Positions 2,724 to 63,786 of a stretch of DNA of 64,000 nt are shown here, piece by piece (the stretch's first letter is position 1; each line of letters begins with the position of its first letter). The stretch lies in the IMG/VR virus record IMGVR_UViG_3300036853_000446, positions 248,001 to 312,000 of that record; one strand, 5' to 3'. Under the pieces are notes generated by a model. The model had not been told where the DNA came from, ran no database searches, and saw nothing but the letters and a program-made list of their open reading frames with translations. A program made the translations under genes and the position numbers.

Positions 2724-2980
2724 GTCGTGGTCTGGTGGGCTCCACGCAGCCTCTCAAATCTCTCTGCTCGCTGAGGAGGCAGCGCAACAGAACCAACGTC
2801 GTGGTCAGGTGGGCTCCACGCAGCCTCTCAAATGTCCGAGATCGCGACTTTAGGGTATGTAAATTCGTCGTGTCGTGGTCAGGTGGGCTCCACGCAGCCT
2901 CTCAAAGAAGGTGAACCCGTTGCTGTATGCCTTCGCGTCTACGAGTCGTGGTCAGGTGGGCTCCACGCAGCCTCTCAAAG
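2724..2980 (-). CRISPR. CRISPR array A1 (4 repeats, 3 spacers)
   Basis: 36-nt repeats GTCGTGGTCWGGTGGGCTCCACGCAGCCTCTCAAAK at 2724, 2798, 2872, 2945; spacers 37-38 nt; leader on the right. Confidence 0.95.
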
Positions 2981-3135
2981 ACGTAGCCTCAAAGTTCAGG
3001 CAATATAGGGCATTACGAGGCGGATTGCGAGAGGGTCGATCGTGCTCTGATTTGCCGTCGCGTAACCCTTCGATTTGCTTTGCATGGGCTGATCGAATCA
3101 CGTACTCGCTCGCCAAAGCCCCAAAGGGGCTCGGT
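2981..3135 (-). promoter_or_regulatory. conserved CRISPR leader copy 1
   Basis: Aligns with 12522-12665 and 18319-18472 (CAATATAGGGCATT, CGGATTGCGAG, GCGTAACCCTTCGATTTGCTTTGC, ATCGAATCAC, CGCTCGCC). Confidence 0.85.
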
Positions 3136-3184: not shown

Positions 3185-3745
3185 ATGGCCCAAACCGACA
3201 CCGTTGCCTCTCGGGTCGCCGCGCGTGTGCTCCACGCCATGGCCTATGATCGAAACGAATTCAGGAATAAGCTCGAAGAGCACATCGGTGGGGCTTACCT
3301 CGAGTTCTACAAGGCGCGGCTCGCAAGCAAGAACGGCCAAACCAAGTGGGTCAAGCACTGGCTCACGGAGGTGCGGCAGCTGCTCGATCGAAACCTCGTC
3401 GCCGCCATGCTGCACGAGATCCGCGGGTTCAAAGACCGGCGCAAGGTATATGAGCAGGTTTGTACCGCCATGAAGGCAAAGGACGCGGGCTACCGCCTGG
3501 CGGCTGAGAACACCGTGCTCCGTGACTACGGCCTTCGCAAGGTGCGCATGCTGCTAGACGATCAGGACACGACTAACTTTTGGGCCCTCGTCGAGCAGGC
3601 CGTCGACACCGGACTGGCAGGCAAGGCTGATGTCGAGCTGCAGGCACAACCCCAAGGCAAGCGCGATAAGGGCCGTGGCAAGCCGGAGAAGGGCGACAAC
3701 GGCCGTGGTAAGGGCGACAAGCGGAAGCGAGCGTCCGCTTCATGA
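3185..3745 (+). CDS. leader-adjacent hypothetical protein, paralog of 12708-13229
   Basis: Shared KLEEHIGGAYLEFYKARLA and EVRQLLDRNLV; basic C-terminal tail. Confidence 0.85.
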   Translation: MAQTDTVASRVAARVLHAMAYDRNEFRNKLEEHIGGAYLEFYKARLASKNGQTKWVKHWLTEVRQLLDRNLVAAMLHEIRGFKDRRKVYEQVCTAMKAKDAGYRLAAENTVLRDYGLRKVRMLLDDQDTTNFWALVEQAVDTGLAGKADVELQAQPQGKRDKGRGKPEKGDNGRGKGDKRKRASAS

Positions 3746-7019: not shown

Positions 7020-7312
7020 TCGCCTCCAAAGTCGCCGAGACCGAAACGTCCGACTTATCTGCCGTCGCGCATGAAGCCCTGTGCAGTCAACGCTGGGAAA
7101 TCGCCGCCGAGTTGCTCGACGCGCTCTTGGCTCGTGACGACGATTACGTAGGCGTGCCCTTCATGGGCCGGTACGCTGGCGCCCCCGATTTCATCGGGGC
7201 CCGCATCGTGGCCGTCAACGAGGCCGTCCGGCGCAACAACGACCGGGATCTCTTGCGAGTCGAGCTTGAAATCGAACAGCAAGAGGCCTCGAAGAGCGAG
7301 CGAAACGAATGA
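7016..7312 (+). CDS. hypothetical protein
   Basis: ATGA-coupled at both ends. Confidence 0.6.
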   Translation: MIASKVAETETSDLSAVAHEALCSQRWEIAAELLDALLARDDDYVGVPFMGRYAGAPDFIGARIVAVNEAVRRNNDRDLLRVELEIEQQEASKSERNE

Positions 7313-7596
7313 ACGTCGATAAGGTCATGTCTTACGCTCACGATCGCCACGGGCTTCTAGGCGATTTGGAAGGGCCCGGGTCGTTCGAGGCCGAGACGGC
7401 TCGTAGCGTCCGCTCGCTTCTCGAGCGTGGCTTCATCGAGCGGCGCGAGCGCACCGTCGTCATCGACCGCAGCTCGTACGGCGGCAACTGGACCGAGATG
7501 CAGCCGGTTGGCCCGACCACGATCGTCACGTGGCACCTGACGGACGCCGGTCGCGAACACTGGCTGAAGCTTCCGGTCAACGAACGCTCAGCGTAA
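7309..7596 (+). CDS. small winged-HTH-like protein
   Basis: RSVRSLLERGFIE...WHLTDAGR. Confidence 0.6.
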   Translation: MNVDKVMSYAHDRHGLLGDLEGPGSFEAETARSVRSLLERGFIERRERTVVIDRSSYGGNWTEMQPVGPTTIVTWHLTDAGREHWLKLPVNERSA

Positions 7597-7604
7597 ACGA
7601 GGCG

Positions 7605-7634
7605 GGATCAAACCTCCCCAGCCCGCCCGTATTC
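7605..7634 (+). promoter_or_regulatory. class-1 ECF-like promoter
   Basis: GGATCAAA-N-CCCGTATTC, ATG 7646. Confidence 0.75.
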
Positions 7635-7645
7635 CCCACGACACC

Positions 7646-7945
7646 ATGAAAAGCACTCTCGATTCGATTCAGGTTTTGGCCGCGCTCGACAACAGCACGC
7701 TCAGCGTCAAAGGCCTCGCGGAGAAGCTCACGGGCGACTCGACCAGCGAGACCGAGCGCGAGGTGGCCGATACCCTCTCGCTCCTCATCGACCAGGACAT
7801 GGTTCGAGCGTTTGAGGCCCACGGCGTGACCTGGTACGAGACGGCTGAGGCACCTCTCGTCCCGCGCCCCTCTCCCAAGCTCGACGCAGGCTACGCCGAC
7901 GAGGATCCGGGCGACGGTCGACCCGACCGCCTCTATGGCAACTGA
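7646..7945 (+). CDS. small winged-HTH-like protein
   Basis: LSVKGLAEKL...EVADTLSLLIDQDMV. Confidence 0.6.
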   Translation: MKSTLDSIQVLAALDNSTLSVKGLAEKLTGDSTSETEREVADTLSLLIDQDMVRAFEAHGVTWYETAEAPLVPRPSPKLDAGYADEDPGDGRPDRLYGN

Positions 7946-8214
7946 TTTTCGGAGCGGGTGCTTCAGCCCCGCTCAAGGGGAACCCCATGCTTTGGGTCGC
8001 GCAGCACGTGCAGCGCTGTGACCAGCCGATCGAGGACTTCGTCCCTATCGGTGGGCGGGAGCCGATCCATAATCCGGACCACGTGGTCAACCGCTTCGTT
8101 GACGGCACGATCGGCAGCCGTATCGGGCGGCAGGTCTTCATCATCATCCATCGCCCGTGATTGTATCCAAAAACTAGTGCCCTGAGCCATAGCCTTTGGC
8201 GTATATTGCCGGGC

Positions 8215-8634
8215 ATGGACTTGCTCGCAGTCGTAAAGAACGGCCGGATCGTCCTCGATGAAGCCACGGATCTCCCCGAAGGGACCGTAGTCGAACTCGG
8301 TGTCTATTACCCGGGGACGATCGCGTCCGACGCAGTCGGGTTCCTCCCTACGCCGCTGCAGCCGGCCGTGAGCACCATCTATAACCTTCGGCAAGCGCTC
8401 ACGGACGGCAAAACGGACATGGCGGCCTTCTACCGCGAACAGCTCGTCTCCGACCTGAACGGGGCTGAAGTCCTGCCCCTCTTGACCGTCGATGTTGCCC
8501 CGGCCCTTCGACAGCTGCTTCGTGCACCGGCGACCGATATTCGTCGACAGGATCTCGCGGCGCTCGAGCTGGCCTTGTTCGACGCCCGATTGCCCGATGC
8601 TGACGAGTCGTCCATCGACACTCCGATGTACTAG
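8215..8634 (+). CDS. antitoxin-like N-terminal domain protein
   Basis: AVVKNGRIVLDEATDLPEGTVVEL resembles DUF104/AF2212-type antitoxins. Confidence 0.5.
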   Translation: MDLLAVVKNGRIVLDEATDLPEGTVVELGVYYPGTIASDAVGFLPTPLQPAVSTIYNLRQALTDGKTDMAAFYREQLVSDLNGAEVLPLLTVDVAPALRQLLRAPATDIRRQDLAALELALFDARLPDADESSIDTPMY

Positions 8635-11773: not shown

Positions 11774-12521
11774 GTCGTGGTCTGGCCTCTTAACTCGAAA
11801 GACGAGCCGTCGTTGATGGGGACATGCGCTGAGTCGTGGTTGGGTGGGCTCCACGCAGCCTCTCAAATGGTATCGAGGAGGACGTCCTTCTCGCTGAACC
11901 GTCGTGGTCTGGTGGGCTCCACGTAGCCTCTCAAATCCACCAGGACGGACAAGCGTCCCGAGTAGTCGGCGTGTCGTGGTTGGGTGGGCTCCACGCAGCC
12001 TCTGAAATCGTCGGGCGAATCGTGTCTCATGCCGACAAGGTACTCGTCGTGGTCGGGTGGGCCCCACGCAGCCTCTCAAATCCGTTGAGAGAAGTAGTGA
12101 CCACTCGGTGTGGGATCTCGTCGTGGTCTGGTGGGCTCCACGCAGCCTCTCAAATTTTTCCTAAGGAGCGAGCCGGCGAACTATCCTCCCCGTCGTGGTC
12201 GGGTGGGCCCCACGCAGCCTCTCAAATCAAGATACCGCTGGTGCGAGACATTGGTGATACGTGGTCGTGGTTAGGTGGGCTCCACGCAGCTTCTCAAAAT
12301 CCATGACGGCGTCAGCGGTTGGTGAGGGTCATCCTCAAGTCGTGGTTGGGTGGGCTCCACGCAGCCTCTCAAATCAGCCGCTCAAATTACGCACCTCGCC
12401 ACGCTGGTTCCGTCGTGGTCAGGTGGGCTCCACGCAGCCTCTCAAATTCTTGTAATCGCCTGCGAGCCGTCCAGCCGCGGGTTGCGTCGTGGTCTGGTGG
12501 GCTCCACGCAGCCGCTCAAAT
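11774..12521 (-). CRISPR. CRISPR array A2 (10 repeats plus 1 internally deleted trailer repeat)
   Basis: Repeats at 11833, 11901, 11973, 12046, 12120, 12192, 12264, 12339, 12412, 12486; degenerate copy 11774-11794. Confidence 0.97.
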
Positions 12522-12665
12522 TTCGTAGCCTTAAAGTTCAGTCAATATAGGGCATTGCAACGCGGATTGCGAGGGGGTCGTTTATGAGCTGGTTTGCTCG
12601 CGCGTAACCCTTCGATTTGCTTTGCGTCGGTTGATCGAATCACCTTCCCGCTCGCCAAAGCCCCA
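12522..12665 (-). promoter_or_regulatory. conserved CRISPR leader copy 2
   Basis: Aligns with the other two leaders. Confidence 0.85.
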
Positions 12666-12707
12666 GAGTCGTCAGTCGCAGGTGTGCTACCCTTCGTTAA
12701 GGCCCCA

Positions 12708-13229
12708 ATGACCCAACCCGATACCGTTGTCGCTCGAGTGGCTGCGCGCGTGCTCCGCGCGATGGCTTATGACCGCAACGGCTTCAAGGACAAGCTCGAA
12801 GAACATATCGGCGGGGCCTATCTCGAGTTCTATAAGGCGCGGCTCGCGACCAAAAACAAGCAAACCGAGTGGGTTCAGCATTGGAACACGGAAGTGCGTC
12901 AGCTGCTCGACCGCAATTTGGTCGGTGCCATGCTGCACTCCATTCGTGGCTTTACGGACCGCCGAAAAGCATACGAGCAAGTTCGGACTATGCTTCGAGC
13001 AAGAGACGCCGGCTACCGGAGGGCGGCCGAAACCATCGTGCTCAAAGACTATGGCCTCCGGAAAGTCCGCATTCCTTTGGACGATCAGGATATGGAGGAT
13101 TTCTGGATCCTCGTTGACGAGGCCGCCGAGAACGGTCTAACGGCGGATCCTGATGCTGAAGTCAAGCCGCAAGGCAAGCGGCAAAAGGGAAAGCCCAACA
13201 AGCGGAAGCGAGCATTAGCCACGCCGTGA
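12708..13229 (+). CDS. leader-adjacent hypothetical protein, paralog of 3185-3745
   Basis: High visible identity to 3185-3745. Confidence 0.85.
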   Translation: MTQPDTVVARVAARVLRAMAYDRNGFKDKLEEHIGGAYLEFYKARLATKNKQTEWVQHWNTEVRQLLDRNLVGAMLHSIRGFTDRRKAYEQVRTMLRARDAGYRRAAETIVLKDYGLRKVRIPLDDQDMEDFWILVDEAAENGLTADPDAEVKPQGKRQKGKPNKRKRALATP

Positions 13230-17550: not shown

Positions 17551-18318
17551 ATCGTGGTCTGGTAAGGCTCCATACAGCCTCGCGAATAAGTTCACAGCTT
17601 GAAAGGTCAAGGACAGATCGGGTTGTCGTGGTTGGGTGGGCTCCACGCAGCCTCTCAAATCGGTCGCCTTTGACACGGGCATACTCATATCATGCTGCCA
17701 GTCGTGGTTGGGTGGGCTCCACGCAGCCTCTCAAATCCGAGCACCACCGCGTCGCGACGCGGAAGGTAGTGGGGTCGTGGTTGGGTGGGCTCCACGCAGC
17801 CTCTCAAATCGCAAGCCAAGGATGCACGTGCTACGGACGACCGCGTGTCGTGGTTGGGTGGGCTCCACGCAGCCTCTCAAATCAAGCTGGCGGAAGCTGC
17901 CGTTGACCACTCTTCTATCGTCGTGGTCGGGTGGGCTCCACGCAGCCTCTCAAATCTGAACCTCGAGTGGATGCTTAATGGACCGCTCATCGTCGTGGTC
18001 GGGTGGGCTCCACGCAGCCTCTCAAATCCAATGCGCGACGAGGCTCGTCACCTGCGTCGGATTGTCGTGGTTGGGTGGGCTCCACGCAGCCTCTCAAATT
18101 CGCCTCGAAGCAGTCGGCACTCGTATCGGATGCGCACGTCGTGGTCGGGTGGGCTCCACGCAGCCTCTCAAATTCTGCGCCTGCAGGTGCGGGCTACCGA
18201 TCACAGTGGCGTCGTGGTCGGGTGGGCTCCACGCAGCCTCTCAAATCCGTCAAGTCCTCGGCCCCGAGACGGAGGTTGTGCTGTCGTGGTCGGGTGGGCT
18301 CCACGCAGCCTCTCAAAT
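17551..18318 (-). CRISPR. CRISPR array A3 (10 repeats plus 1 degenerate trailer repeat)
   Basis: Repeats at 17625, 17701, 17774, 17847, 17920, 17992, 18064, 18138, 18211, 18283; degenerate copy 17551-17587. Confidence 0.97.
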
Positions 18319-18472
18319 CTGTAGCCATAAAGTCCAGGCAATATAGGGCATTGCAAGGCGGATTGCGAGAGGGTCATTTACGAGCTGGTTTGTTCGCGCG
18401 TAACCCTTCGATTTGCTTTGCGTGAACTATCGAATCACCTTCGCGCTCGCCGAAGCCCAGAGGGGCTTCGGC
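18319..18472 (-). promoter_or_regulatory. conserved CRISPR leader copy 3 with distal hairpin
   Basis: Aligns with other leaders; perfect GCCGAAGCCC-AGAG-GGGCTTCGGC at 18449-18472. Confidence 0.85.
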
Positions 18473-34096: not shown

Positions 34097-35092
34097 GTGA
34101 AACGGCGCCTCAAGGAAATCACCCCGAATATCCACAACGAAAAGCTGTTTGACTCGACGGACGAGAGCCTGGCTGAGCTGGGGCGCGACATCGAGCGGAA
34201 CGGGCTGCGGTGCCCGATCCGCATCACGAAAGTTGGTGCGGTCATCATCGATGGTGAGCGTCGGTGGCGTGTCTGCAAAAAACTCGGCTGGACCCTCATC
34301 GATGTCGTGGAGGAAGACGTCCACCGGAACGAAATTCTCGGTCTCCTCATCGACACCGTTTCACAGCAGCGGCACATGACGTTGATCGAGCAGGCCCGCG
34401 TTTACGCGACGTATTACAACCACCTAAAGAGAGCGCACCGGAAGGGCGATCTCAACCACATCGCGGCCAAGCAGATCGCACTCGAGAAAGCGCGACTGCC
34501 TTTCCGATCGGTGGCTCTCGCCGATCAACTCGTGCAAGTCGTCGACCGAGGCCACCCCGACCTGCATGAGAAATTGCTCCGCGGGGAGATGAGCATCACT
34601 GGGGCCTACGAGGCCATCCTGCGACGCTTGTATAAGCCCATGAAATACGAGCTACTCCCCCGCCCCGAGCGTACCCTCGAACAGCTCGCTCGAGCCAAGC
34701 GGCATGAAGACGAACGGCTCGAAAGGCAGGAAGAGCTGGAATTTACCCAGACTTACATTGATGCCCATCTGGATGACCTCGAATCGGTGGAGGCGCAACG
34801 AAGGCTGCTCGGACTGTTCGAGCCCGATCCGCCTCCCGCGGCGCTGAAATACCGAGACAACCCCGAGAGCCAAGTCATCGCAGAGGCCTTTGAGTCCCTG
34901 GCTGTGAAGGAGCCCCCCGAGCTGCTCGTTGGGCGCCTCACGATGTTCATCGAAGAGATCGCGGCGAGCGTCCAAGGCGTCGATGAGTCGCGCGCGCGGG
35001 ACATCGTTCGAGACGTGGTCAAGCCGATGGTCCTTCGTCTCGCGCAAGCCTTCCCGCGCCAGGAGTTCGAAGTCCCCGTCAATCGGGAATGA
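34097..35092 (+). CDS. ParB N-terminal domain protein
   Basis: LAELGRDIERNGLRCPI...IIDGERRWR. Confidence 0.85.
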   Translation: MKRRLKEITPNIHNEKLFDSTDESLAELGRDIERNGLRCPIRITKVGAVIIDGERRWRVCKKLGWTLIDVVEEDVHRNEILGLLIDTVSQQRHMTLIEQARVYATYYNHLKRAHRKGDLNHIAAKQIALEKARLPFRSVALADQLVQVVDRGHPDLHEKLLRGEMSITGAYEAILRRLYKPMKYELLPRPERTLEQLARAKRHEDERLERQEELEFTQTYIDAHLDDLESVEAQRRLLGLFEPDPPPAALKYRDNPESQVIAEAFESLAVKEPPELLVGRLTMFIEEIAASVQGVDESRARDIVRDVVKPMVLRLAQAFPRQEFEVPVNRE

Positions 35093-41922: not shown

Positions 41923-42159
41923 GATGTCAGGTCTCCCTGTGAGGACGCTGCGACCGGAGCCGCAACGTCGAGTAGAACCTAAAGATAGCATGGCTCTCTA
42001 GTGGGCGCCAGCGGGGCGGGCGGCCGGGGACTTACGCAATCGAGTCCAGGGTTCAAAAGGCTTCCCGGAGCTGCCTCGCGACCAAAGGCGAATCACGGTC
42101 ATTGTTTCCCTTCCCTTTGGATCCCGTCGGAGGCAAACTCGCACCCCATTGAGGGGTCA

Positions 42160-43602
42160 ATGGCAAAGAGGAAGTCAAAGACGACGAGTGTCCAGCCCGG
42201 TGAAGTGCTGAAGGGGTTTCGCGTCAAACTCAGACCGACCCAGGAGGATCTGCGTTACCTATCGACGGCTCAAGTCGAGCTGATGACGATGTGGAACATC
42301 CTCGTGATAACGTGGAAGACGCACGTCGATTACTGCGTTCGGCATTGCGAGGACCTCGGGCTCATCGGACCCGTACCGCCACGACCGACCTCGGACCAAG
42401 ACACGAACGTGCCCGAAGAGATCGCCGAATGGGAGGAGTACGCGGCACTCTGCCGTGAACGCCGCCGAAGCGCTCGCGAGCAGTGTAAGACCGTCGAGGG
42501 TCTGACACGGCGCGACTGGGCGAATCGAGCCCTCGATTACCACCAACTTGATCTCACGGAGAAGGCTCGAGAGCAGACGCAGATCGATTACCGCGTCCTG
42601 CGGTCCGCCGTGAAGGGCGTCACGACGGCCCATATGGCCCAGGCCGTCATCGAGACTTACAAGGCGTCATTGCAGAAAGGGCGGCCGCCACCGAAGCTCA
42701 AGAGACGCCCGCTCGAGATGCCTCTCTTGCTTCGCAGCGGTAAGGATTTGCTTACGCTTTCAGCGAACCACTCCACCCGAACGACGGCGTCCGGGAAGAA
42801 GCGGCTCACCGGCTCCCACCACTGCATCGTCAAGTTTGGCCCGCTCAAGATCGGGGGACGATTCAACCGCCCGCCGTCGGGTCCCTTCCTCCAGGGCATT
42901 TCGATCGGGCTCGAGAAGGACGGCTGGTACGCCTCCGCGAAGGTCCGGACCCTACCTGAGGATCTGCCGAAGCCAACGAAGGAAATCATCGCGATCAACC
43001 CGGGACTCGAATGCCTCTACGCCGACAATGAGGGTTATGTGATCGAGAACCCACGGGGCAACGCTTACTCCCTCCGGATGCGCGAGATGAGCGATTGGAT
43101 CGACGACGCCGAAACCCAGTGGGACGAAGCCCACCGTCGCAACCATCAAGCTCGATATGCCGAGCGTTTCGCGCGGCACACGGAGGACCTCATCTACAGC
43201 CGCATCCTCCCGAAGCTCGCCGATTACGAGACGATTCTCATCGGCAAGGCCGGCAAAACCGCCGCTCAAGGTCGACAAAACCGCATCAGTAAGAACGACG
43301 AGGGCGGCTACGTTTCGGCCATGAGCTTGATGCAGCAGCTCATCATCCAGAGGTATGGCCTCTATGACCCCGACGAGAATCCGACGGGGCGAGTGCGAGT
43401 GCTGGAGTCCATGGGAATTTCCCGGAGGTGCTCGCGTTGCGGAACCGAGCACGCAACCCGTTATCAACGCAACAATTTACGCCGGTATGACCAACAGACC
43501 GATTGCCAGGAACCCTCGTGTCGGCTCAAGATACACGTCGATGTTGGCGCCGCTCGCAACCTGCTTTCCAACTATCGGGATTTGCAGGCGGCAGCAGAAT
43601 GA
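42160..43602 (+). CDS. compact type V (TnpB/Cas12-like) effector with inactivated RuvC, 480 aa
   Basis: TnpB-like GFRVKLRPT, PKLKRR, GWYAS; RuvC-I IIAINPG (D->N), RuvC-II TILIGK (E->G), Zn finger CSRC...CQEPSC, RuvC-III HVDVGAARNL; RBS GAGGGG; array 2 nt downstream. Confidence 0.88.
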   Translation: MAKRKSKTTSVQPGEVLKGFRVKLRPTQEDLRYLSTAQVELMTMWNILVITWKTHVDYCVRHCEDLGLIGPVPPRPTSDQDTNVPEEIAEWEEYAALCRERRRSAREQCKTVEGLTRRDWANRALDYHQLDLTEKAREQTQIDYRVLRSAVKGVTTAHMAQAVIETYKASLQKGRPPPKLKRRPLEMPLLLRSGKDLLTLSANHSTRTTASGKKRLTGSHHCIVKFGPLKIGGRFNRPPSGPFLQGISIGLEKDGWYASAKVRTLPEDLPKPTKEIIAINPGLECLYADNEGYVIENPRGNAYSLRMREMSDWIDDAETQWDEAHRRNHQARYAERFARHTEDLIYSRILPKLADYETILIGKAGKTAAQGRQNRISKNDEGGYVSAMSLMQQLIIQRYGLYDPDENPTGRVRVLESMGISRRCSRCGTEHATRYQRNNLRRYDQQTDCQEPSCRLKIHVDVGAARNLLSNYRDLQAAAE

Positions 43603-43604
43603 CC

Positions 43605-44869
43605 CTCAGAACGGCAGCGTGGTGCCTACCCTCCCACGACGAGGAGTTCGGTGGCCGCGCGCGATGATGTGCAAGACCTCAGAACGGCAGCGTGGTGCCT
43701 ACCCTCCCACGACACGAGGTCGGAAAGAGTCTCAATCTCGGCAATCTCACGCTCAGAACGGCAGCGTGGTGCCTACCCTCCCACGACGACCTGCGGAAGA
43801 AGGGCCTTCGCCGATCTACTTGGGCTCAGAACGGCAGCGTGGTGCCTACCCTCCCACGACGAAGTGACGTCTACCAATTGGGCTTGGTCCTCTATCACTC
43901 AGAACGGCAGCGTGGTGCCTACCCTCCCACGACTTATGGGGATGAACCGAGAACCAGCCTCGATCGATGTCTCAGAACGGCAGCGTGGTGCCTACCCTTC
44001 CACGATAGCCGCGTCCTCCAAACTGCCGAATCGATTCCGAAACTCAGAACGGCAGCGTGGTGCCTACCCTCCCACGACGGCATCTCCACTCGTTCCCTCG
44101 TCCTCCGGGTATGGACCTCAGAACGGCAGCGTGGTGCCTACCCTCCCACGACTACGGCTGGCGGTCCCCCGCCAAACGAGGTTGGCGTGCTCAGAACGGC
44201 AGCGTGGTGCCTACCCTCCCACGACGAAACATCACGCGCCTGGGCAACAGCATCAGCGTCGCCATCTCAGAACGGCAGCGTGGTGCCTACCCTCCCACGA
44301 CCAACGACATGACCCCGTGGAACCTGTGAGCTTGCTCGGCGCTCCTCGGAACGGCAGCGTGGTGCCTACCCTCCCACGACGGAAAGACTCGTTCGTGATC
44401 CCGAGTCGACCCCCATGCTCAGAACGGCAGCGTGGTGCCTACCCTTCCACGACGAGGAGTTCGGTGGCCGCGATGGTGATGCGCAAGCCCTCAGCATGGC
44501 AGCGTGGTGCCTACCCCTCCACGACTTCGAGCAACACGTCAACGCGCGTATTGGCTCGTTCAGCCTCAGAGTGGCAGCGCGGTGCCTACCCTTCCGCGAC
44601 ACGTCCCCCAGTTAGCGGAAAGCCTCGGTACTGGTCTCAGAATGGCAGCGTGGTGCCTACCCTTCCACGACCACATCCGTGGATAGAGAGTCCCCCTCCG
44701 GAGTCAACCTCAGAACGGCAGCGTGGTGCCTACCCTTCCACGACTTTCCGATCTCGTTAAAGTAGATGCGGACTTATGGCAGCGTGGTGCCTACCCTTCC
44801 ACGACGTGCACGGGTCTTCTCAAAGAAAGACGCCTCAGAACGGCAGCGTGGTGCCTACCATTCCACGAC
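43605..44869 (+). CRISPR. CRISPR array B (18 repeats, 17 spacers)
   Basis: 36-nt CTCAGAACGGCAGCGTGGTGCCTACCCTYCCACGAC at 43605, 43678, 43752, 43825, 43898, 43971, 44043, 44117, 44190, 44266, 44345, 44418, 44490, 44565, 44636, 44709, ~44770 (5'-degenerate), 44834; decay increases away from the gene. Confidence 0.98.
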
Positions 44870-45975: not shown

Positions 45976-46160
45976 GGTTGAGAGGCTGCGTGGAGCCCAC
46001 CCAACTACGACGGTATCATTCGGCTTTTTATCAGGTCCCCCGATCCGGAGTAACTTGCGAGGCTGCGTGGAGCCCACCCAACTACGATATGCCCGTGCCG
46101 ACGTGGCGCTTCCAAGAAAGGTACATTTGAGAGGCTGCGTGGAGCCCATCACACCACGAC
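45976..46160 (+). CRISPR. CRISPR mini-array A4 (3 family-A repeats)
   Basis: Repeats at 45976, 46053, 46125 in the ATTTGAGAGG...CCACGAC orientation. Confidence 0.9.
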
Positions 46161-46250
46161 TTGCTTGGATCGTTGACTTGATAGGTTTTCAACCCTGATG
46201 ACAGGCTTGCACCGATGAACCCGGTTGGCTCGACCCCAAACCCGGGTAAC

Positions 46251-46286
46251 GATGAAATGGCAGCGTGGTGCCTACCCTTCCACGAC
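46251..46286 (+). repeat. orphan family-B CRISPR repeat
   Basis: GATGAAATGGCAGCGTGGTGCCTACCCTTCCACGAC, 3' 28 nt match repeat B. Confidence 0.85.
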
Positions 46287-49340: not shown

Positions 49341-51872
49341 ATGCTCAGAGAGTCAGGGGCAGCTCGCGCGAGGGACTGTGCACCCTCAAGTGCCGTCCAC
49401 CGCACCGCTAAAACAGAGCCCGTTGTCATTCAGTGCTTTGAGGCACCGTGCGGGACACGACCACATAACCTGCCGAAACGAAAAGGAAAGGATAAAGCGT
49501 ACGTCCCGAACAGGTCGCAGCGTGCCAGCTACACAGCCCTGGATGGTCAACTCCTTTGTATACTTACCAAGCCAACGGGTAGCGGAAAAACCATTGACAT
49601 CCTAACACTTGCACTGAGCGACCTCGCAAAGCCCGACGGACGAAAACAGGTCGTCATCTACTCGATGACGGACATCGGTCCTGGCTTCGGTGGCCCAGGA
49701 AGGCAGGAGGGCCCCATCACGATCGACGTTCCGGGGCATGGGCTCATGACCTGGACCCCGATTTGTGCCTCTGAACAGACCGTCGAAACGATCATCAACT
49801 TCTTGCGACGGCGCCCCGCCAAGGATCGCAGTCAGCGCATGCTCATCTGCACCCACCTTGCTCTGGTGCTGGCTCACGAGGAAATGCTGCGACGTGGTTA
49901 TAAGCGCCCCTTCAAAAAAACCTCACTCTACATAGACGAGTGCCACCACATCTGCTGGGACATGTCGAGTGGCACAGCCGTCACGAACGGCCTCGGTAAG
50001 ATCGTTTCCCATTACTACGAGTGCCGGCCCGGCAAGCTCGTGCTTGCCACTGCCACGTTCATGCGCCCTGACGGGCAGGTCATCCCGCCCGAGTATCGCG
50101 ACAAATTCGCCGCCTACGAGCTTCCGATGCATGAGCACCTTGCATCGATGCCGCACCTGAAGGGGATACGCTTCCACTTCGTGATGGCGTCCGCTGTCGA
50201 GGCTGTTGAGACGATCATCGGGGGAGACCCTCATCGCCCGACGCTAATGTGGTTGCCAAACAACGTGATCGGCAGCGCCAAGGCGCCTTATGTCAAGCGC
50301 TTGGTCGACGCTACACCTGACTGTATTCGCGACCGAATTTACGACTTCACGGATGACGAGCAGGTGTCCGAGATTCGAGAGCGCTTTCACCGGCTCAAAC
50401 TGGACCCTGTCGAGTACCCGTGCCTTGGGATTGCCCTGCGTCGGTTGCTCGAGGGAGTTGACTCACCTATGGCGAGCCGCGGGATCATCCTCGGGCTTCG
50501 CGGTATCCGGGACATCATCCAGATGGTCGGGCGCTTTATCCGCGACTTAGAAGGCAAGCCGTATGCTGATATCTACATCGTCGTCGACCCTCCCTCCGAA
50601 GACGAAGCAGACGTTGTCGAGCACCTCGAGGACAATCTCTCCGCCATCTTCATTGCGATGATCGCGGGGTGGCAGTACGGCCCGGCCCGCAAGCCCCGGA
50701 ACAAGGCGGAGCGGGATCTCGCCGAGAAGGTGGGTAAGATTCTCAGCAACCCGGAAGCAACCACCGTAGTGCTAAACGCAATCGCGAGCGCGGTCGCCCG
50801 TCACGCTGACGGTGAGCCGGAGCAACTCAGCGCCGGCATGCACGAATCCATGCGTCGACTGGCAGAAGAGCGACCGGACCTCGCGGACATGAAGGACCCT
50901 GCGGTTCGGTCACGACTCGTCGAGGACGTCGACGAAAGAATGGCAGGACCTGCTGCCGAAGCCGAGAAGAAGCTGAAATACAAGATCCCGGGGCTCAAGG
51001 GAGCGCGAGATCTGACTGGGCTCAAGTTGACGGCTGAGCAAGGTCTTGCTCGCAACATCACGGTCCTCGGCTTCACGTGCGGCGCGCGCAGCATGAAGAT
51101 GATGAGGGAGAGTTTAGCGTCGGATACAATTGAACTCGTATACGAAGATGTGCGAGAAGCCGCCCTCCGATGGTGGGAAGCAACCGGTAAGTTCCCCCAC
51201 GCGGGAATGGTGGGCGTAGTGGTTGATATCGGAGGCCGTCAGCATTGCTGGCGTCAGGTCAACGGCTGGCTGAGCCGGCACTGCAGCTCGTCCTTGGGCA
51301 AACTCAGAATCGAGTGCACGGGCAACCTCGGCAGGGGTCTGATTCCGTATGATCTAGTCGCAGAGGAGGCATCTGAATACCGGGCCCGGACCGGTGAGTG
51401 GCCTCGAATTAAATCGGGACCCCTCGCTCGATTGCGTACTACGTGGGAGACACTATACCAAAAGTTCATTCGGGAAGGCACTAGCCTGGAAGACTTTTTG
51501 GAATCCAGGTTCGGGCCCTTGCGACTGAGACACTTCGACACCTATGACGAATGGCGAAAACACGCACTGGATGCAAACGTCGGTTGTCATACGGACTATC
51601 AGAGAGCGCGCGGTGAGTCTCGCATTGACAGCCGATTCCCCTCAAATCCGCGAGATTATTACGGTGCCGGGTGGAAGGGGTGGCCAAAAGACCGCAAGGT
51701 CTCACGTGGTGAAAGCCATGGATGCGCAAAGTTGTCCGATGCATCGATCAAGCGAATGCGAAGGCGATTTAAGCAGCGTTTCACAAAGCGCGCCGTCGCC
51801 GAAGAGTTTGGTGTCTCCATCTCAACCGTCAAGCTCATCAAGTCTGGGCGCATTTGGGCACACGTGAAGTGA
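49341..51872 (+). CDS. SF2 helicase with C-terminal DNA-binding modules
   Basis: KPTGSGKT, IDECHH, ATAT, LLEGVD, IQMVGRFIR; CGGTGTA at 49307-49313. Confidence 0.85.
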   Translation: MLRESGAARARDCAPSSAVHRTAKTEPVVIQCFEAPCGTRPHNLPKRKGKDKAYVPNRSQRASYTALDGQLLCILTKPTGSGKTIDILTLALSDLAKPDGRKQVVIYSMTDIGPGFGGPGRQEGPITIDVPGHGLMTWTPICASEQTVETIINFLRRRPAKDRSQRMLICTHLALVLAHEEMLRRGYKRPFKKTSLYIDECHHICWDMSSGTAVTNGLGKIVSHYYECRPGKLVLATATFMRPDGQVIPPEYRDKFAAYELPMHEHLASMPHLKGIRFHFVMASAVEAVETIIGGDPHRPTLMWLPNNVIGSAKAPYVKRLVDATPDCIRDRIYDFTDDEQVSEIRERFHRLKLDPVEYPCLGIALRRLLEGVDSPMASRGIILGLRGIRDIIQMVGRFIRDLEGKPYADIYIVVDPPSEDEADVVEHLEDNLSAIFIAMIAGWQYGPARKPRNKAERDLAEKVGKILSNPEATTVVLNAIASAVARHADGEPEQLSAGMHESMRRLAEERPDLADMKDPAVRSRLVEDVDERMAGPAAEAEKKLKYKIPGLKGARDLTGLKLTAEQGLARNITVLGFTCGARSMKMMRESLASDTIELVYEDVREAALRWWEATGKFPHAGMVGVVVDIGGRQHCWRQVNGWLSRHCSSSLGKLRIECTGNLGRGLIPYDLVAEEASEYRARTGEWPRIKSGPLARLRTTWETLYQKFIREGTSLEDFLESRFGPLRLRHFDTYDEWRKHALDANVGCHTDYQRARGESRIDSRFPSNPRDYYGAGWKGWPKDRKVSRGESHGCAKLSDASIKRMRRRFKQRFTKRAVAEEFGVSISTVKLIKSGRIWAHVK

Positions 51873-52297
51873 GACAACGCCAGGCGAAGTCCAATGGAAC
51901 GAGCGTTCCCACTCGCGTCCTGACCTGGTACCTCGCCACGAGCGCGAAAGGTGGCACCGTCGACGACTGCTCTCGCTCTCTGGGGCTCGCGAATCAGTCG
52001 GTGTCGGGGGCGGTGACACGGCTCACGAACGCCGGCAAGCTGTCAAAGACCGACCTCACGCGCAGCACTCGACTGAAGCGCCCGGCAGCCGTCTACGTCC
52101 ACAGCAAATTCGCAAAGGGCCCGTCCAATGCGAACAAGGCCGAAGCTTCCCGAGCTGAAGCCGCTCGGGAAGCAAGAGTCCTCCAACTCTTCCGGCAGTA
52201 TGTGGAGGCTCGGAAGAAGGCAGGGAAGGACGAGCGGGCGATCCAGCGGGCGCTCATGCGGTTAATGAAAGGGCTGGCGGTCGAGGCGGAGCGTTAA
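51869..52297 (+). CDS. winged-HTH protein (same pattern as 46750-47292)
   Basis: GTVDDCSRSLGLANQSVSGAVTRLTNAGKL...TRSTR...AAVY. Confidence 0.7.
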   Translation: MRQRQAKSNGTSVPTRVLTWYLATSAKGGTVDDCSRSLGLANQSVSGAVTRLTNAGKLSKTDLTRSTRLKRPAAVYVHSKFAKGPSNANKAEASRAEAAREARVLQLFRQYVEARKKAGKDERAIQRALMRLMKGLAVEAER

Positions 52298-58681: not shown

Positions 58682-58846
58682 ATGGCAGCACGTCGGACCC
58701 GTTCACCATCACAAGCGCCATCAGAGCCGAATGCCGAGACGGTGCGCGTAACCTGTTACCAGGTCGACGTTTCGCGGGAACAGCAACAAGCCATTCATCA
58801 GCAGCTTCTCGAATTACTCGCTGAAATTTATCGGAACCTTAAATGA
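58682..58846 (+). CDS. 54-aa protein coupled to the recombinase
   Basis: MAARRTRS...QLLELLAEIYRNLK; ATGA overlap with 58843; not in ORF track. Confidence 0.55.
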   Translation: MAARRTRSPSQAPSEPNAETVRVTCYQVDVSREQQQAIHQQLLELLAEIYRNLK

Positions 58847-60420
58847 AGGCTGCAATCTACGCCCGTGTGTCGTCCGACCAGCAAAGGGAGCGCCACACCA
58901 TCGGCTCGCAGCTCACCGAGCTACCCAAGTACGCAAAAAGCCAAGGCTGGACGGTTGTCCGACTCTACCAAGACGACGGCAAGTCGGGAGAGAGTATCGA
59001 CGGGCGTCCAGAGTTTCAGGCACTTCTCGAGGACGCCGAGAAGAAACTCTTTGAAATTGTCCTCGTCATCGACCTCGACCGCATCACTCGCTCGAAACGT
59101 GATCAGGAGGGGGCTTTCATCTACGACACGTTTCGGTTGCATGGCATCAAGCTGGCGACTCCGAGCAACGGTCTCATCGATCTCGAGAATGAGGACCAGG
59201 ACCTTCAGATCGGTATCCTTCAGGCTTTCGCAAAGTTTGAGAAGCGGAAATTTCTCCGCCGAACGATGCGAGGTAAGTATCAGGCCGCTAAAGACGGGAA
59301 GCGGTATGGTTCGATCGATCCCTACGGGTATCGGTGGGTTATCGACCCGGTCTTGAAGGCGGGGGGCTCGTACCAGATCGTCGAGGACGAAGCTAAAGTC
59401 GTTCGTCGCATCTACAGCCTCGCTCTCGAAGGTCATGGCGTGGCAATGATCGCTTGGATGTTAGAGAATGAGGGTATTCGGACGCGACCACGCGCACCCC
59501 GTGGCACCGAAGGCAAGATCGCCGGTCCTTGGTGGCGCTCGTCTGTGCTGAAGGTTCTGCATTCCGTGACGTACACGGGATCGTTCAAAGTCCTCAAGGG
59601 GAAGGAGAGCGAACCCCTCTCGATCAAGGTCCCGCCTATTGTCACCCGGGCAACCTGGGACGCAGCCCAGAGGGCGCTCACACAGCGCAAGATGTCCTCG
59701 GGCGCTCCGGCACGACACGACCACCTCTTACGCGGATGCGCCTCGTGCGGCGTCTGCGGGTACAAGATGTGGATCGTTACCCCTAGGGCCGGCAAAAGCG
59801 CTGCCTACTACAGATGCTGCACGACCAACGGATGGCGCGGCATGGGCCTCAAGGGCCCATGTGGCAACAAGCACCACCGAGTGGACCGCACGGACCATGA
59901 GGTCCAGACGAAGGTGCTCGAGATTCTGCAAAATCCAAAGCTGCTAGCTCAAGCGTGTTCGTTGCAGGGTGAACCTACGGACGGGGTCGACTGGAAAGGT
60001 CAGCTCCGAGGTCTCGAGCAAAAGCTTGCGATACTGGATGAGGCCGCGTCCGACGCGATGGTCCGTCAGCGTCGGGGAATCATTCCTTCCGCGGTCGCCG
60101 AGAAGGAACTCCTGAACATTGCCCGCGAGCGAAAGCTCGTTGACCGAAACGTCAAACTAGCGCGTGTCAGATCCGGTAAAGCCTCAGCTGAACGCAGCCT
60201 GCGCCAAAATATCGAGGATCAAGCAAAGGCCCTAAGCAGCGGACTCGATCAAGCGGACTTTGAAACGCGACGGAAGATTATCACCCTGCTCCTTCCGAGA
60301 GAGCTGGGCTGCGGTGTCGTCCTGCACCGGGACGGTGGTATCGACATCAAATGGGTCCTGCCACTGCCCGGCGACATCGAGCACGTGGAACTACGCACCG
60401 CCCTCAAAAAAGTTGGGTGA
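58843..60420 (+). CDS. large serine recombinase (integrase)
   Basis: AAIYARVSS, DDGKSG, RPEFQALL, DLDRITR, PYGY recombinase domain, CGVC...YYRC...C Zn ribbon, coiled coil. Confidence 0.95.
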   Translation: MKAAIYARVSSDQQRERHTIGSQLTELPKYAKSQGWTVVRLYQDDGKSGESIDGRPEFQALLEDAEKKLFEIVLVIDLDRITRSKRDQEGAFIYDTFRLHGIKLATPSNGLIDLENEDQDLQIGILQAFAKFEKRKFLRRTMRGKYQAAKDGKRYGSIDPYGYRWVIDPVLKAGGSYQIVEDEAKVVRRIYSLALEGHGVAMIAWMLENEGIRTRPRAPRGTEGKIAGPWWRSSVLKVLHSVTYTGSFKVLKGKESEPLSIKVPPIVTRATWDAAQRALTQRKMSSGAPARHDHLLRGCASCGVCGYKMWIVTPRAGKSAAYYRCCTTNGWRGMGLKGPCGNKHHRVDRTDHEVQTKVLEILQNPKLLAQACSLQGEPTDGVDWKGQLRGLEQKLAILDEAASDAMVRQRRGIIPSAVAEKELLNIARERKLVDRNVKLARVRSGKASAERSLRQNIEDQAKALSSGLDQADFETRRKIITLLLPRELGCGVVLHRDGGIDIKWVLPLPGDIEHVELRTALKKVG

Positions 60421-63636: not shown

Positions 63637-63786
63637 ATTTCAGAGGCTGCGTGGAGCCCGCCCAACCACGACTCATTCAATCGGCAGAACTTGGTTCAAA
63701 TATGAAGGGCTGCGTGGAGCCCACCCAACCACGACAAGATTCACGACACGCTGTGAGAGGCCGCGTGGAGCCCACCCAACCACGAC
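63637..63786 (+). CRISPR. CRISPR mini-array A5 (3 family-A repeats, short spacers)
   Basis: Repeats at 63637, 63700, ~63751; spacers 27 and 15-18 nt; AT-rich upstream with TACAAT at 63604-63609. Confidence 0.9.

Follow-up and report, generated by a model that had tools for sequence, protein, structure and literature searches.

Can a protein with the layout of TnpB and Cas12 still serve as the effector of a CRISPR system when the catalytic site of its RuvC nuclease is disrupted, and what would it then do? This question is raised by a gene and an adjoining CRISPR array on IMGVR_UViG_3300036853_000446, a 407,634-bp IMG/VR contig from a soil metagenome. We analyzed positions 248001-312000 of this contig, a 64-kb stretch referred to as the window, together with 5 kb beyond it. 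Related effector loci are denoted by L-numbers and family proteins by P-numbers. Our reading, to which we give a probability of roughly 60%, is that the effector would be guided by CRISPR RNA (crRNA) to bind DNA without cutting it, and that this would be used in competition between mobile elements, by analogy with known systems.

The effector and its family

The gene in question is the following:

42160..43602, plus strand: effector gene, encoding a miniature TnpB/Cas12-fold protein of 480 amino acids (aa)

In the list of open reading frames (ORFs), this gene appears as 42001..43602 (plus strand), with 533 aa counted from a GTG. Starting at the ATG at 42160 instead yields 480 aa; this ATG has a Shine-Dalgarno-like GAGGGG 4-9 nt upstream and agrees with the N-termini of the homologues in the alignment. 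The stop codon is TGA, at 43600-43602. We modeled the protein with AlphaFold2 on a 56-sequence alignment, then compared the model by Foldseek and with its ESM Atlas neighbours. The model had a mean predicted local distance difference test (pLDDT) score of 91.5 and a predicted template modelling (pTM) score of 0.84, and it matched solved Cas12f, TnpB, Cas12p and Cas12m structures with a Foldseek probability of 1.0. This bears out the TnpB/Cas12 layout that an initial annotation, made from the sequence alone, had assigned to the 480-aa protein. Cas12f and TnpB structures (6e-14 to 1e-11, with AsCas12f at 6e-14) ranked above Cas12m2 (1.6e-9). Identity to the solved Cas12f structures was 13-16%, and the structural neighbours in the ESM Atlas were bona fide TnpBs (template modelling scores 0.62-0.74).

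Family models matched the effector weakly. The matches were to the Pfam Cas12f1-like TNB domain (E 2e-4), NCBIfam TnpB (2.8e-5) and C2c8 (0.017), and PADLOC Cas12u2 (6e-5); the Cas12f2 and C2c8 models matched only far below their cut-offs. We gathered 63 relatives in two database searches and aligned them with the window effector. The family profile matched TnpB across ~250 residues (1e-23) and also matched Cas12f, while its match to Cas12m chains covered only the C-terminal 55-120 residues (E 7e-9).

We examined the catalytic motifs in alignments with relatives that keep the DED triad (Asp, Glu, Asp). In RuvC-I, IAINPG of the effector aligns with GIDVG of the DED relatives, and a profile alignment puts the Asn on the Asp of GIDPG in 9b0l, a solved TnpB-like protein. 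Both alignments therefore place N280 where the RuvC-I Asp would be. In RuvC-II, ETILIGK aligns with xxIxVExL, and G362 takes the place of the Glu. In RuvC-III, HVDVGAARN aligns with RDxNAARN; here D461 is kept and is invariant across the clade described below. The four zinc-finger cysteines (CxxC/CxxxxC; C424, C427, C449 and C454) are all invariant. The initial annotation had read the same pattern, with Asn in RuvC-I, Gly in RuvC-II and only the RuvC-III Asp and the zinc finger kept, and it stands. Judged by alignment and predicted structure, the effector is a compact TnpB/Cas12-type protein with a disrupted RuvC triad.

We constructed a maximum-likelihood tree (quick search) of the 64 family members, without outgroup references. 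Proteins with an N-x-D triad (Asn, a variable residue, Asp), the window effector among them, form one clade of 18 cluster representatives (Shimodaira-Hasegawa-like approximate likelihood ratio test 99), with 37-72% identity and lengths of 435-520 aa. The RuvC-II position in this clade holds G, S, A, D, H, L, R or Q, and N-D-D occurs in the family only in P0007 and P0010. The N-x-D clade is sister to a small clade without all three catalytic residues (P0020, P0028, P0034 and P0039; ~420-445 aa, GG-type, seen on short contigs), and both are nested among DED members. The ORFs of the N-x-D clade are intact, and the ratio of nonsynonymous to synonymous substitution rates (dN/dS) is 0.12-0.35, a rough estimate because dS is saturated. 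A monophyletic clade that reaches down to 37-39% identity with intact ORFs and such ratios indicates that the inactive form is maintained by selection.

Repeats follow the gene in every N-x-D locus with enough downstream DNA, which makes 10 loci besides the window. They lie directly past the stop codon in L001, L002/3, L007, L017 (23 repeats) and L018, and after a ~255-nt leader in L004, L006 and L014. In L015 (3981-4050) and L026 (2489-2560) there is a solo repeat with one guide and no second repeat, and neither guide has a local target. Arrays of 36-nt repeats were also found directly 3' of the gene in five DED loci, three of them IMG/VR relatives whose contigs span 44-149 kb and the other two P0022 and P0024. 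Since DED relatives also carry arrays of 36-nt pseudoknot repeats, the CRISPR link is older than the loss of the nuclease. The N-x-D clade thus branched off within a family of miniature Cas12 proteins in which arrays were present beforehand, and was not recruited on its own from a transposon TnpB. The independent TnpB-to-CRISPR recruitment of an inactive protein that had been proposed earlier is not supported in that form, as the DED relatives already carry arrays of the same type.

The DED sister group comprises at least 120 clusters, which are named only 'transposase' or 'hypothetical' in their sources. In DED relatives of the window effector, RuvC-III has the DRDxN motif that marks the 'typical TnpB' major clade, to which many V-U-type groups with arrays belong. 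The wider family is metagenome-only. The effector protein and the repeat pairs were absent from 185,579 GTDB species genomes, and a tblastn search with the effector found nothing in curated plasmid and phage collections. In DNA sequencing runs, the element was present at ~16x depth in one soil sample, with traces elsewhere. A second, diverged homologue of the effector is present in the source soil sample on short contigs, with 7 differences in 71 nt (window 42317-42353 and 43279-43349), which indicates that related elements coexist there.

Arrays, leaders and guide RNA

We found 49 matches to the repeat core in the window against 0.15 expected by chance, which excludes a chance origin. They make up six arrays with 49 repeats and 43 spacers in total, three of them with a conserved leader:

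2724-2980, minus strand: array A, 4 type-2 repeats and 3 spacers
2981..3130, minus strand: leader of array A, of the same family as leaders B and C
11833-12521, minus strand: array B, 10 type-2 repeats and 9 spacers
12522..12671, minus strand: leader of array B, of the same family as leaders A and C
17625-18318, minus strand: array C, 10 type-2 repeats (core GGCTGCGTGGAGCC...CCACGAC) and 9 spacers
18319..18468, minus strand: leader of array C, of the same family as leaders A and B, with a CTCGCAA motif and a TATATT box
43605-44869, plus strand: array D, 17 spacers between 18 repeats of type 1, each 36 nt long (core GGCAGCGTGGTGCC...CCACGAC)
45976-46286, plus strand: array E, an irregular array of 4 repeats (three of type 2, one of type 1) that includes a 90-nt gap
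63637-63786, plus strand: array F, 3 type-2 repeats whose spacers are short (27 and 15 nt)

Array D is the 18-repeat array that the initial annotation had seen beginning 2 nt past the effector stop, and it was found exactly there; the five further arrays with related repeats had been overlooked. Its period is ~73 nt and its spacers are mostly 36-38 nt long. The type-1 repeat of array D (GGCA...TGCC) and the type-2 repeat (GGCT...AGCC) differ by a compensatory pair. None of arrays A, B, C, E and F, which hold the 31 repeats beyond array D, adjoins an effector gene. Degenerate repeats occur in array D, on the side away from the gene, as well as in arrays E and F. The 15-nt spacer of array F (63772-63786) is identical to the trailer beside array A (2709-2723), so array F, probably a remnant, resembles a piece of an A-like array that has been rearranged. 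Spacers 1 (43641-43677) and 12 (44454-44489) of array D have their first 19 nt in common and then diverge; on sequence grounds, they look like diverged, allele-like versions of one protospacer.

To describe the guide RNA, we aligned 17 distinct repeats from ten loci, which required no gaps. The repeat forms an H-type pseudoknot, in which stem 1 pairs positions 9-12 with 19-22 and stem 2 pairs positions 14-18 with 30-34. All 153 of 153 cells of the alignment pair, and both-side compensatory changes were found in 7 of the 9 pairs, including all five pairs of stem 2. None of 500 shuffles equalled the observed values, and only 29-47% of cells pair when the pattern is slid by 1-3 columns. Six G-U cells would be A-C mismatches if the other strand were read, which points to transcription in the direction of the gene. 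The pseudoknot helix ends two bases ahead of the spacer, and these bases (A-C) are nearly invariant. The same topology recurs in the repeats of DED relatives, where stem 1 and the 5' strand of stem 2 are displaced by 3 nt. The strand order of the repeat (stem, pseudoknot, A-C, guide) is that described for the Cas12m2 crRNA.

We searched for an anti-repeat near the arrays by pattern search and by RNAduplex against shuffled controls and found none; the strong signals were only degenerate terminal repeats read on the opposite strand. Rfam gave no match in the window. The most economical reading of the repeat sequences is that they encode a self-folding crRNA handle that would need no trans-activating crRNA (tracrRNA), which is notable for a protein of TnpB size.

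Leaders A, B and C are conserved with one another across at least 120 nt, and each of the three arrays is divergent from a plus-strand gene. Two of these genes (3185-3745 and 12594-13229, plus strand) are paralogues with 66% identity. This suggests a duplicated 'array plus gene' module. The CTCGCAA motif lies ~51 nt before the first repeat and is invariant in 6 leaders from 4 elements. A 23-nt leader stretch of two related loci (L004 11159-11181 and L014 3277-3299) is identical at 21 of 23 positions to 43545-43567 of the window (z 7.5). This part of the window consists of RuvC-III codons at the 3' end of the effector gene, and it lies at the same distance of 51-52 nt from the first repeat as the stretch in L004 and L014. 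A scan for consensus sigma-70 promoters did not flag the conserved leaders. The leaders may act as a promoter or as an integration signal, or may be the relic of a duplicated gene end plus array.

At L014, a second array with an unrelated 37-nt repeat (1-339) is located 1.3 kb upstream of the N-x-D effector and might supply adaptation in trans.

We also searched for the targets of the spacers. All spacers were compared with the window and the related loci, which gave only chance matches of at most 15 nt. Array D spacers had no credible match in PLSDB plasmids or GenBank phages (sensitive mode), and in exact-pattern scans of IMG/VR with four spacers, the remainder of the contig included, the arrays themselves were all that matched. 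A 19-nt spacer match in L028 was rejected; it diverges right after the shared core and is about what is expected by chance.

Proposed function on the mobile element

In the mechanism that we infer, the locus would be a stand-alone type V module, without adaptation genes, on a giant soil mobile element. The arrays would be transcribed on the strand of their repeats, with array D probably read through from the effector gene and arrays A-C served by their own conserved leaders, and the pre-crRNA would be cut into units of handle plus spacer. The pseudoknot formed by the 36-nt repeat 5' of the spacer would be the handle of the crRNA, with no need for a tracrRNA. The 480-aa effector would bind this handle and find complementary double-stranded DNA, presumably beside a protospacer-adjacent motif (PAM). 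With the RuvC-I Asp and the RuvC-II Glu lost, it would stay bound and block transcription or replication of the target. The likely targets would be competing phages, plasmids and other elements in the same hosts.

Such a Cas12m-like mechanism is favoured by the loss of two carboxylates, the selection on the inactive state, the array linkage and the precedent of Cas12m itself. Cas12m variants, including N-D-D, are DNA binders that do not cut, and they provide protection from phages and plasmids; Cas12m is carried on plasmids without adaptation genes. Foreign, variable targets are favoured over fixed regulation by the many diverse spacers, the lack of self-matches and the diverged versions in spacers 1 and 12.

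Several points weigh against this reading. As to expression and crRNA processing, the sequencing runs examined for the source were DNA runs and none was RNA. As to targets and PAM, no protospacers were found in any collection searched. It is assumed that one effector reads both type-1 and type-2 repeats, and the spacers would have to be acquired without Cas1-Cas2. In addition, the alignment shows an invariant D461 and a nearly invariant E381, the latter of which might be a relocated carboxylate.

This last point belongs to an alternative in which RuvC is rearranged, not dead. N280, D461 and an acidic residue (E381) would hold the metal, and the effector would cut or nick DNA or only process pre-crRNA. 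Within the N-x-D clade, E381 lies in a clade-specific NDEGGY insertion after RuvC-II. According to the literature, TnpB commonly has rearranged catalytic sites that are probably still active, and RuvC-dependent pre-crRNA processing is known in Cas12c and Cas12j. However, the change of the RuvC-I Asp to Asn plus the loss of the RuvC-II Glu is the pattern of non-cleaving Cas12m variants. Moreover, eight different residues are tolerated at RuvC-II, so there is no constraint at that site, and the sister clade has lost all three residues. We therefore consider a rearranged active site unlikely.

To place the system in its context, we scanned the 82 predicted window ORFs with Pfam and PHROGs. None was cas1, cas2, cas4, tnpA or a tns gene, in agreement with the initial annotation, which had reported no cas1/2/4, tnpA or tnsBC/tniQ. 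No adaptation genes were found within 4-10 kb of the related effectors, and no tnsB/tnsC/tniQ, Mu or tnpA genes in the window or the related loci. The other features of the window are:

297-665: HicA-like toxin domain
34097-35092: ParB-like protein
49341..52297, plus strand: helicase-like gene and partner gene, a possible accessory pair, as a lead only
58843-60420: large serine recombinase/integrase, 525 aa

The window also has helix-turn-helix (HTH) regulators, and the remainder is almost entirely ORFans. ParB, the serine integrase, HicA and the HTH regulators are genes typical of mobile elements. The mobile-element setting claimed earlier is thus supported by ParB and the serine integrase on the 407,634-bp contig. 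Related effectors lie near type IV secretion system genes, a tyrosine (phage) integrase, RusA or RtcB. In L017, an RtcB RNA ligase gene (7176-8384, Pfam E 3e-124) directly follows the 23-repeat array, and in L018 an RtcB-homologous fragment (38-319) lies upstream of the effector.

The helicase-like pair underlies a second alternative, in which the effector is only a targeting module and recruits a separate enzyme that destroys or unwinds the target. The candidate is an 843-aa superfamily 2 (SF2) helicase-like protein (49341-51872, plus strand) with Walker A and DECH motifs, together with its 147-aa partner (51854-52297, plus strand). The 843-aa protein has weak PHROGs matches to helicase families and, in its C-terminal stretch, to HNH endonuclease and HTH families. 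The pair is ~4.5 kb from array D in the window and is conserved in L004 (6237-8780 and 8762-9205; 61% identity), where it directly precedes the effector. The literature describes an association of Cas12m with Cas3, and type IV systems with DinG offer a parallel. However, the pair is absent from L001, L002, L006, L007, L017 and L026. We compared all neighbouring genes with one another and found synteny only among the window, L004 and L006, whose relatedness as elements explains what they share. This comparison gave no family-wide conserved accessory gene; the effector is the only gene common across the family. Enzyme recruitment is therefore doubtful. An 872-aa gene in L007, considered as a counterpart of the 843-aa helicase-like gene, proved to be unrelated.

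It is similarly doubtful that the effector is an RNA-guided transcription factor for genes of the element or its host, like TldR or array-linked dCas12f. Array-linked dCas12f guides aimed at efflux promoters have been reported, and L015 and L026 have a single repeat with one guide, as fixed-guide regulators do. The solo-guide loci suggest that some relatives moved toward a regulator role. In the window, however, there are 43 diverse spacers in six arrays, and two of the spacers are allelic variants of one site, which looks like acquisition from varying foreign targets. No spacer has a match in the window, and for neither solo guide was a target found in its own locus, though targets in the host genome may exist.

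A role as a guide for transposition or site-specific integration, as for Cas12k in CRISPR-associated transposons (CASTs) or CasMu-V, is highly improbable: RuvC inactivation is typical of transposon-recruited Cas12 and a large serine recombinase is present, but the transposition genes sought above are lacking, the arrays are long, unlike those of V-K, which has the shortest arrays in type V, and the recombinase is 15 kb away and not conserved beside homologues. It is equally improbable that the locus is what remains of an active mini Cas12 system that is decaying and no longer works; this would fit the degenerate repeats described above and the lack of adaptation genes, but not the intact ORFs with dN/dS of 0.12-0.35 in a clade diverged below 40% identity, the conserved motifs and array linkage, or the repeat structure kept by compensatory changes.

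If crRNA-guided binding without cutting is correct, the clade would add an independent case to the recurring theme of mobile elements keeping nuclease-dead type V effectors against competitors. It would also be an unusually small natural scaffold for CRISPR interference, which seems to manage with a short self-folding crRNA alone, in contrast to effectors the size of Cas12f or TnpB. Its small size would be attractive for repression, base editing and epigenome editing under delivery-size limits. DED and N-x-D members with one repeat architecture form a natural series in which to study what else changes along with the loss of cleavage in a Cas12, and six arrays with conserved leaders and no adaptation genes sharpen the question of where spacers come from in such elements. 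Much more tentatively, at ~435-480 aa and with a 36-nt handle that folds unaided and needs no tracrRNA, the clade may represent the smallest self-sufficient RNA-guided DNA binder found in nature; it would have been inactivated separately from Cas12m, Cas12k, TldR and dCas12f, and a giant soil element would use it with a multi-array arsenal against rival elements. Bolder still, it may pass bound targets to the neighbouring SF2 helicase/HNH-like protein, as a new class 2 counterpart of Cas3 recruitment.

Comparison with known systems

The window locus has the hallmarks of type V: a TnpB-derived WED/REC/RuvC/zinc-finger fold and a link to arrays, seen in the window, 10 N-x-D loci and 5 DED loci. 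Within type V, the effector resembles Cas12m (V-M, formerly V-U1) in being compact, with a non-canonical RuvC triad, a downstream array and no adaptation module. Cas12m is found on plasmids and prophages, uses crRNA only, and acts by DNA binding and silencing. The repeat is also alike, with a stem and a pseudoknot ending in A-C just before the guide (topology compared with the description of Cas12m2). The two differ in length, as the effector of 480 aa is ~120 aa shorter than Cas12m (~600 aa), and in the triad, which is N-(G/S/A/D/H/L/R/Q)-D in the clade and HEK/HQK, HDD, DED/NED, DND or N-D-D in Cas12m, so that only P0007 and P0010 coincide. The sequence relationship to Cas12m is detectable only in the C-terminal RuvC-III/zinc-finger region, and no Cas12m family model in NCBIfam, Pfam or PADLOC matched the effector. 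The initial annotation had named nesting inside a described Cas12m clade with the same triad as one outcome that would overturn its proposal; by profile, Foldseek order and triad, the effector falls outside. As far as sequence and predicted structure indicate, membership in Cas12m is not supported, given the C-terminal-only profile match, the Foldseek order, the length and the triad; in sequence and fold, the effector is closer to TnpB and Cas12f. By analogy, Cas12m would be the nearest system in function and ecology.

Cas12f provided the best structural matches, is similar in size and shares the TNB zinc-finger domain, and array-linked dead derivatives of it are noted in the literature. However, Cas12f works as a dimer with a long tracrRNA or single-guide RNA, whereas the repeat here folds on its own. 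Membership in Cas12f (V-F) was rejected because no anti-repeat was found, the models matched only below their cut-offs and identity is 13-16%. In dCas12f, RuvC was lost by C-terminal truncation, often with a sigma-E or HTH partner; in contrast, the C-terminus of the effector is intact, and it has no sigma-E or conserved HTH neighbour. TldR is also nuclease-dead, of TnpB size and a presumed guide-RNA DNA binder, and two members of the N-x-D clade have a single guide. However, TldR uses one long omega-RNA-type guide and acts on specific host genes, whereas the window has six arrays with 43 spacers. We therefore rejected an identity with TldR, which only L015 and L026 approach with their solo guides, and these are without a local target.

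Cas12k and Cas12c are naturally non-cleaving, DNA-binding type V effectors, and neither fits the locus. Cas12k comes with Tn7 genes, a tracrRNA and very short arrays, and Cas12c is large and has an intact RuvC for RNA processing. An assignment to Cas12k/CAST was rejected, since no tnsB, tnsC or tniQ was found in the 82 window ORFs or the related loci, nor any anti-repeat. The V-U groups, V-O and V-P are likewise array-linked TnpB-like effectors, mostly without adaptation genes and often known from metagenomes only. About 40 metagenomic V-U groups have been described, some with altered RuvC sites. V-U24, V-U43 and V-U44 have a non-canonical RuvC-I, and V-O and V-P are predicted to block transcription. 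V-U24 is associated with an HTH protein, which was not seen at the loci here.

Inactivation of RuvC is recurrent in type V, shown or predicted for V-C, V-M, V-O, V-P and Cas12b3. Cas12k, Cas12m and TldR were named as RuvC-inactive relatives in the initial annotation, but that list was incomplete, as Cas12c, array-linked dCas12f, V-O, V-P, Cas12b3 and several V-U groups are likewise reported either not to cleave or to have an altered or inactivated RuvC site. This longer list lowers the novelty of the finding. The N-x-D clade most likely represents a separate, unnamed lineage, with the V-U, V-O and V-P groups compared by text description only. The system introduces no new concept; its lineage is distinct and unusually small, its guide architecture is well supported, and its multi-array layout on a giant element is unusual.

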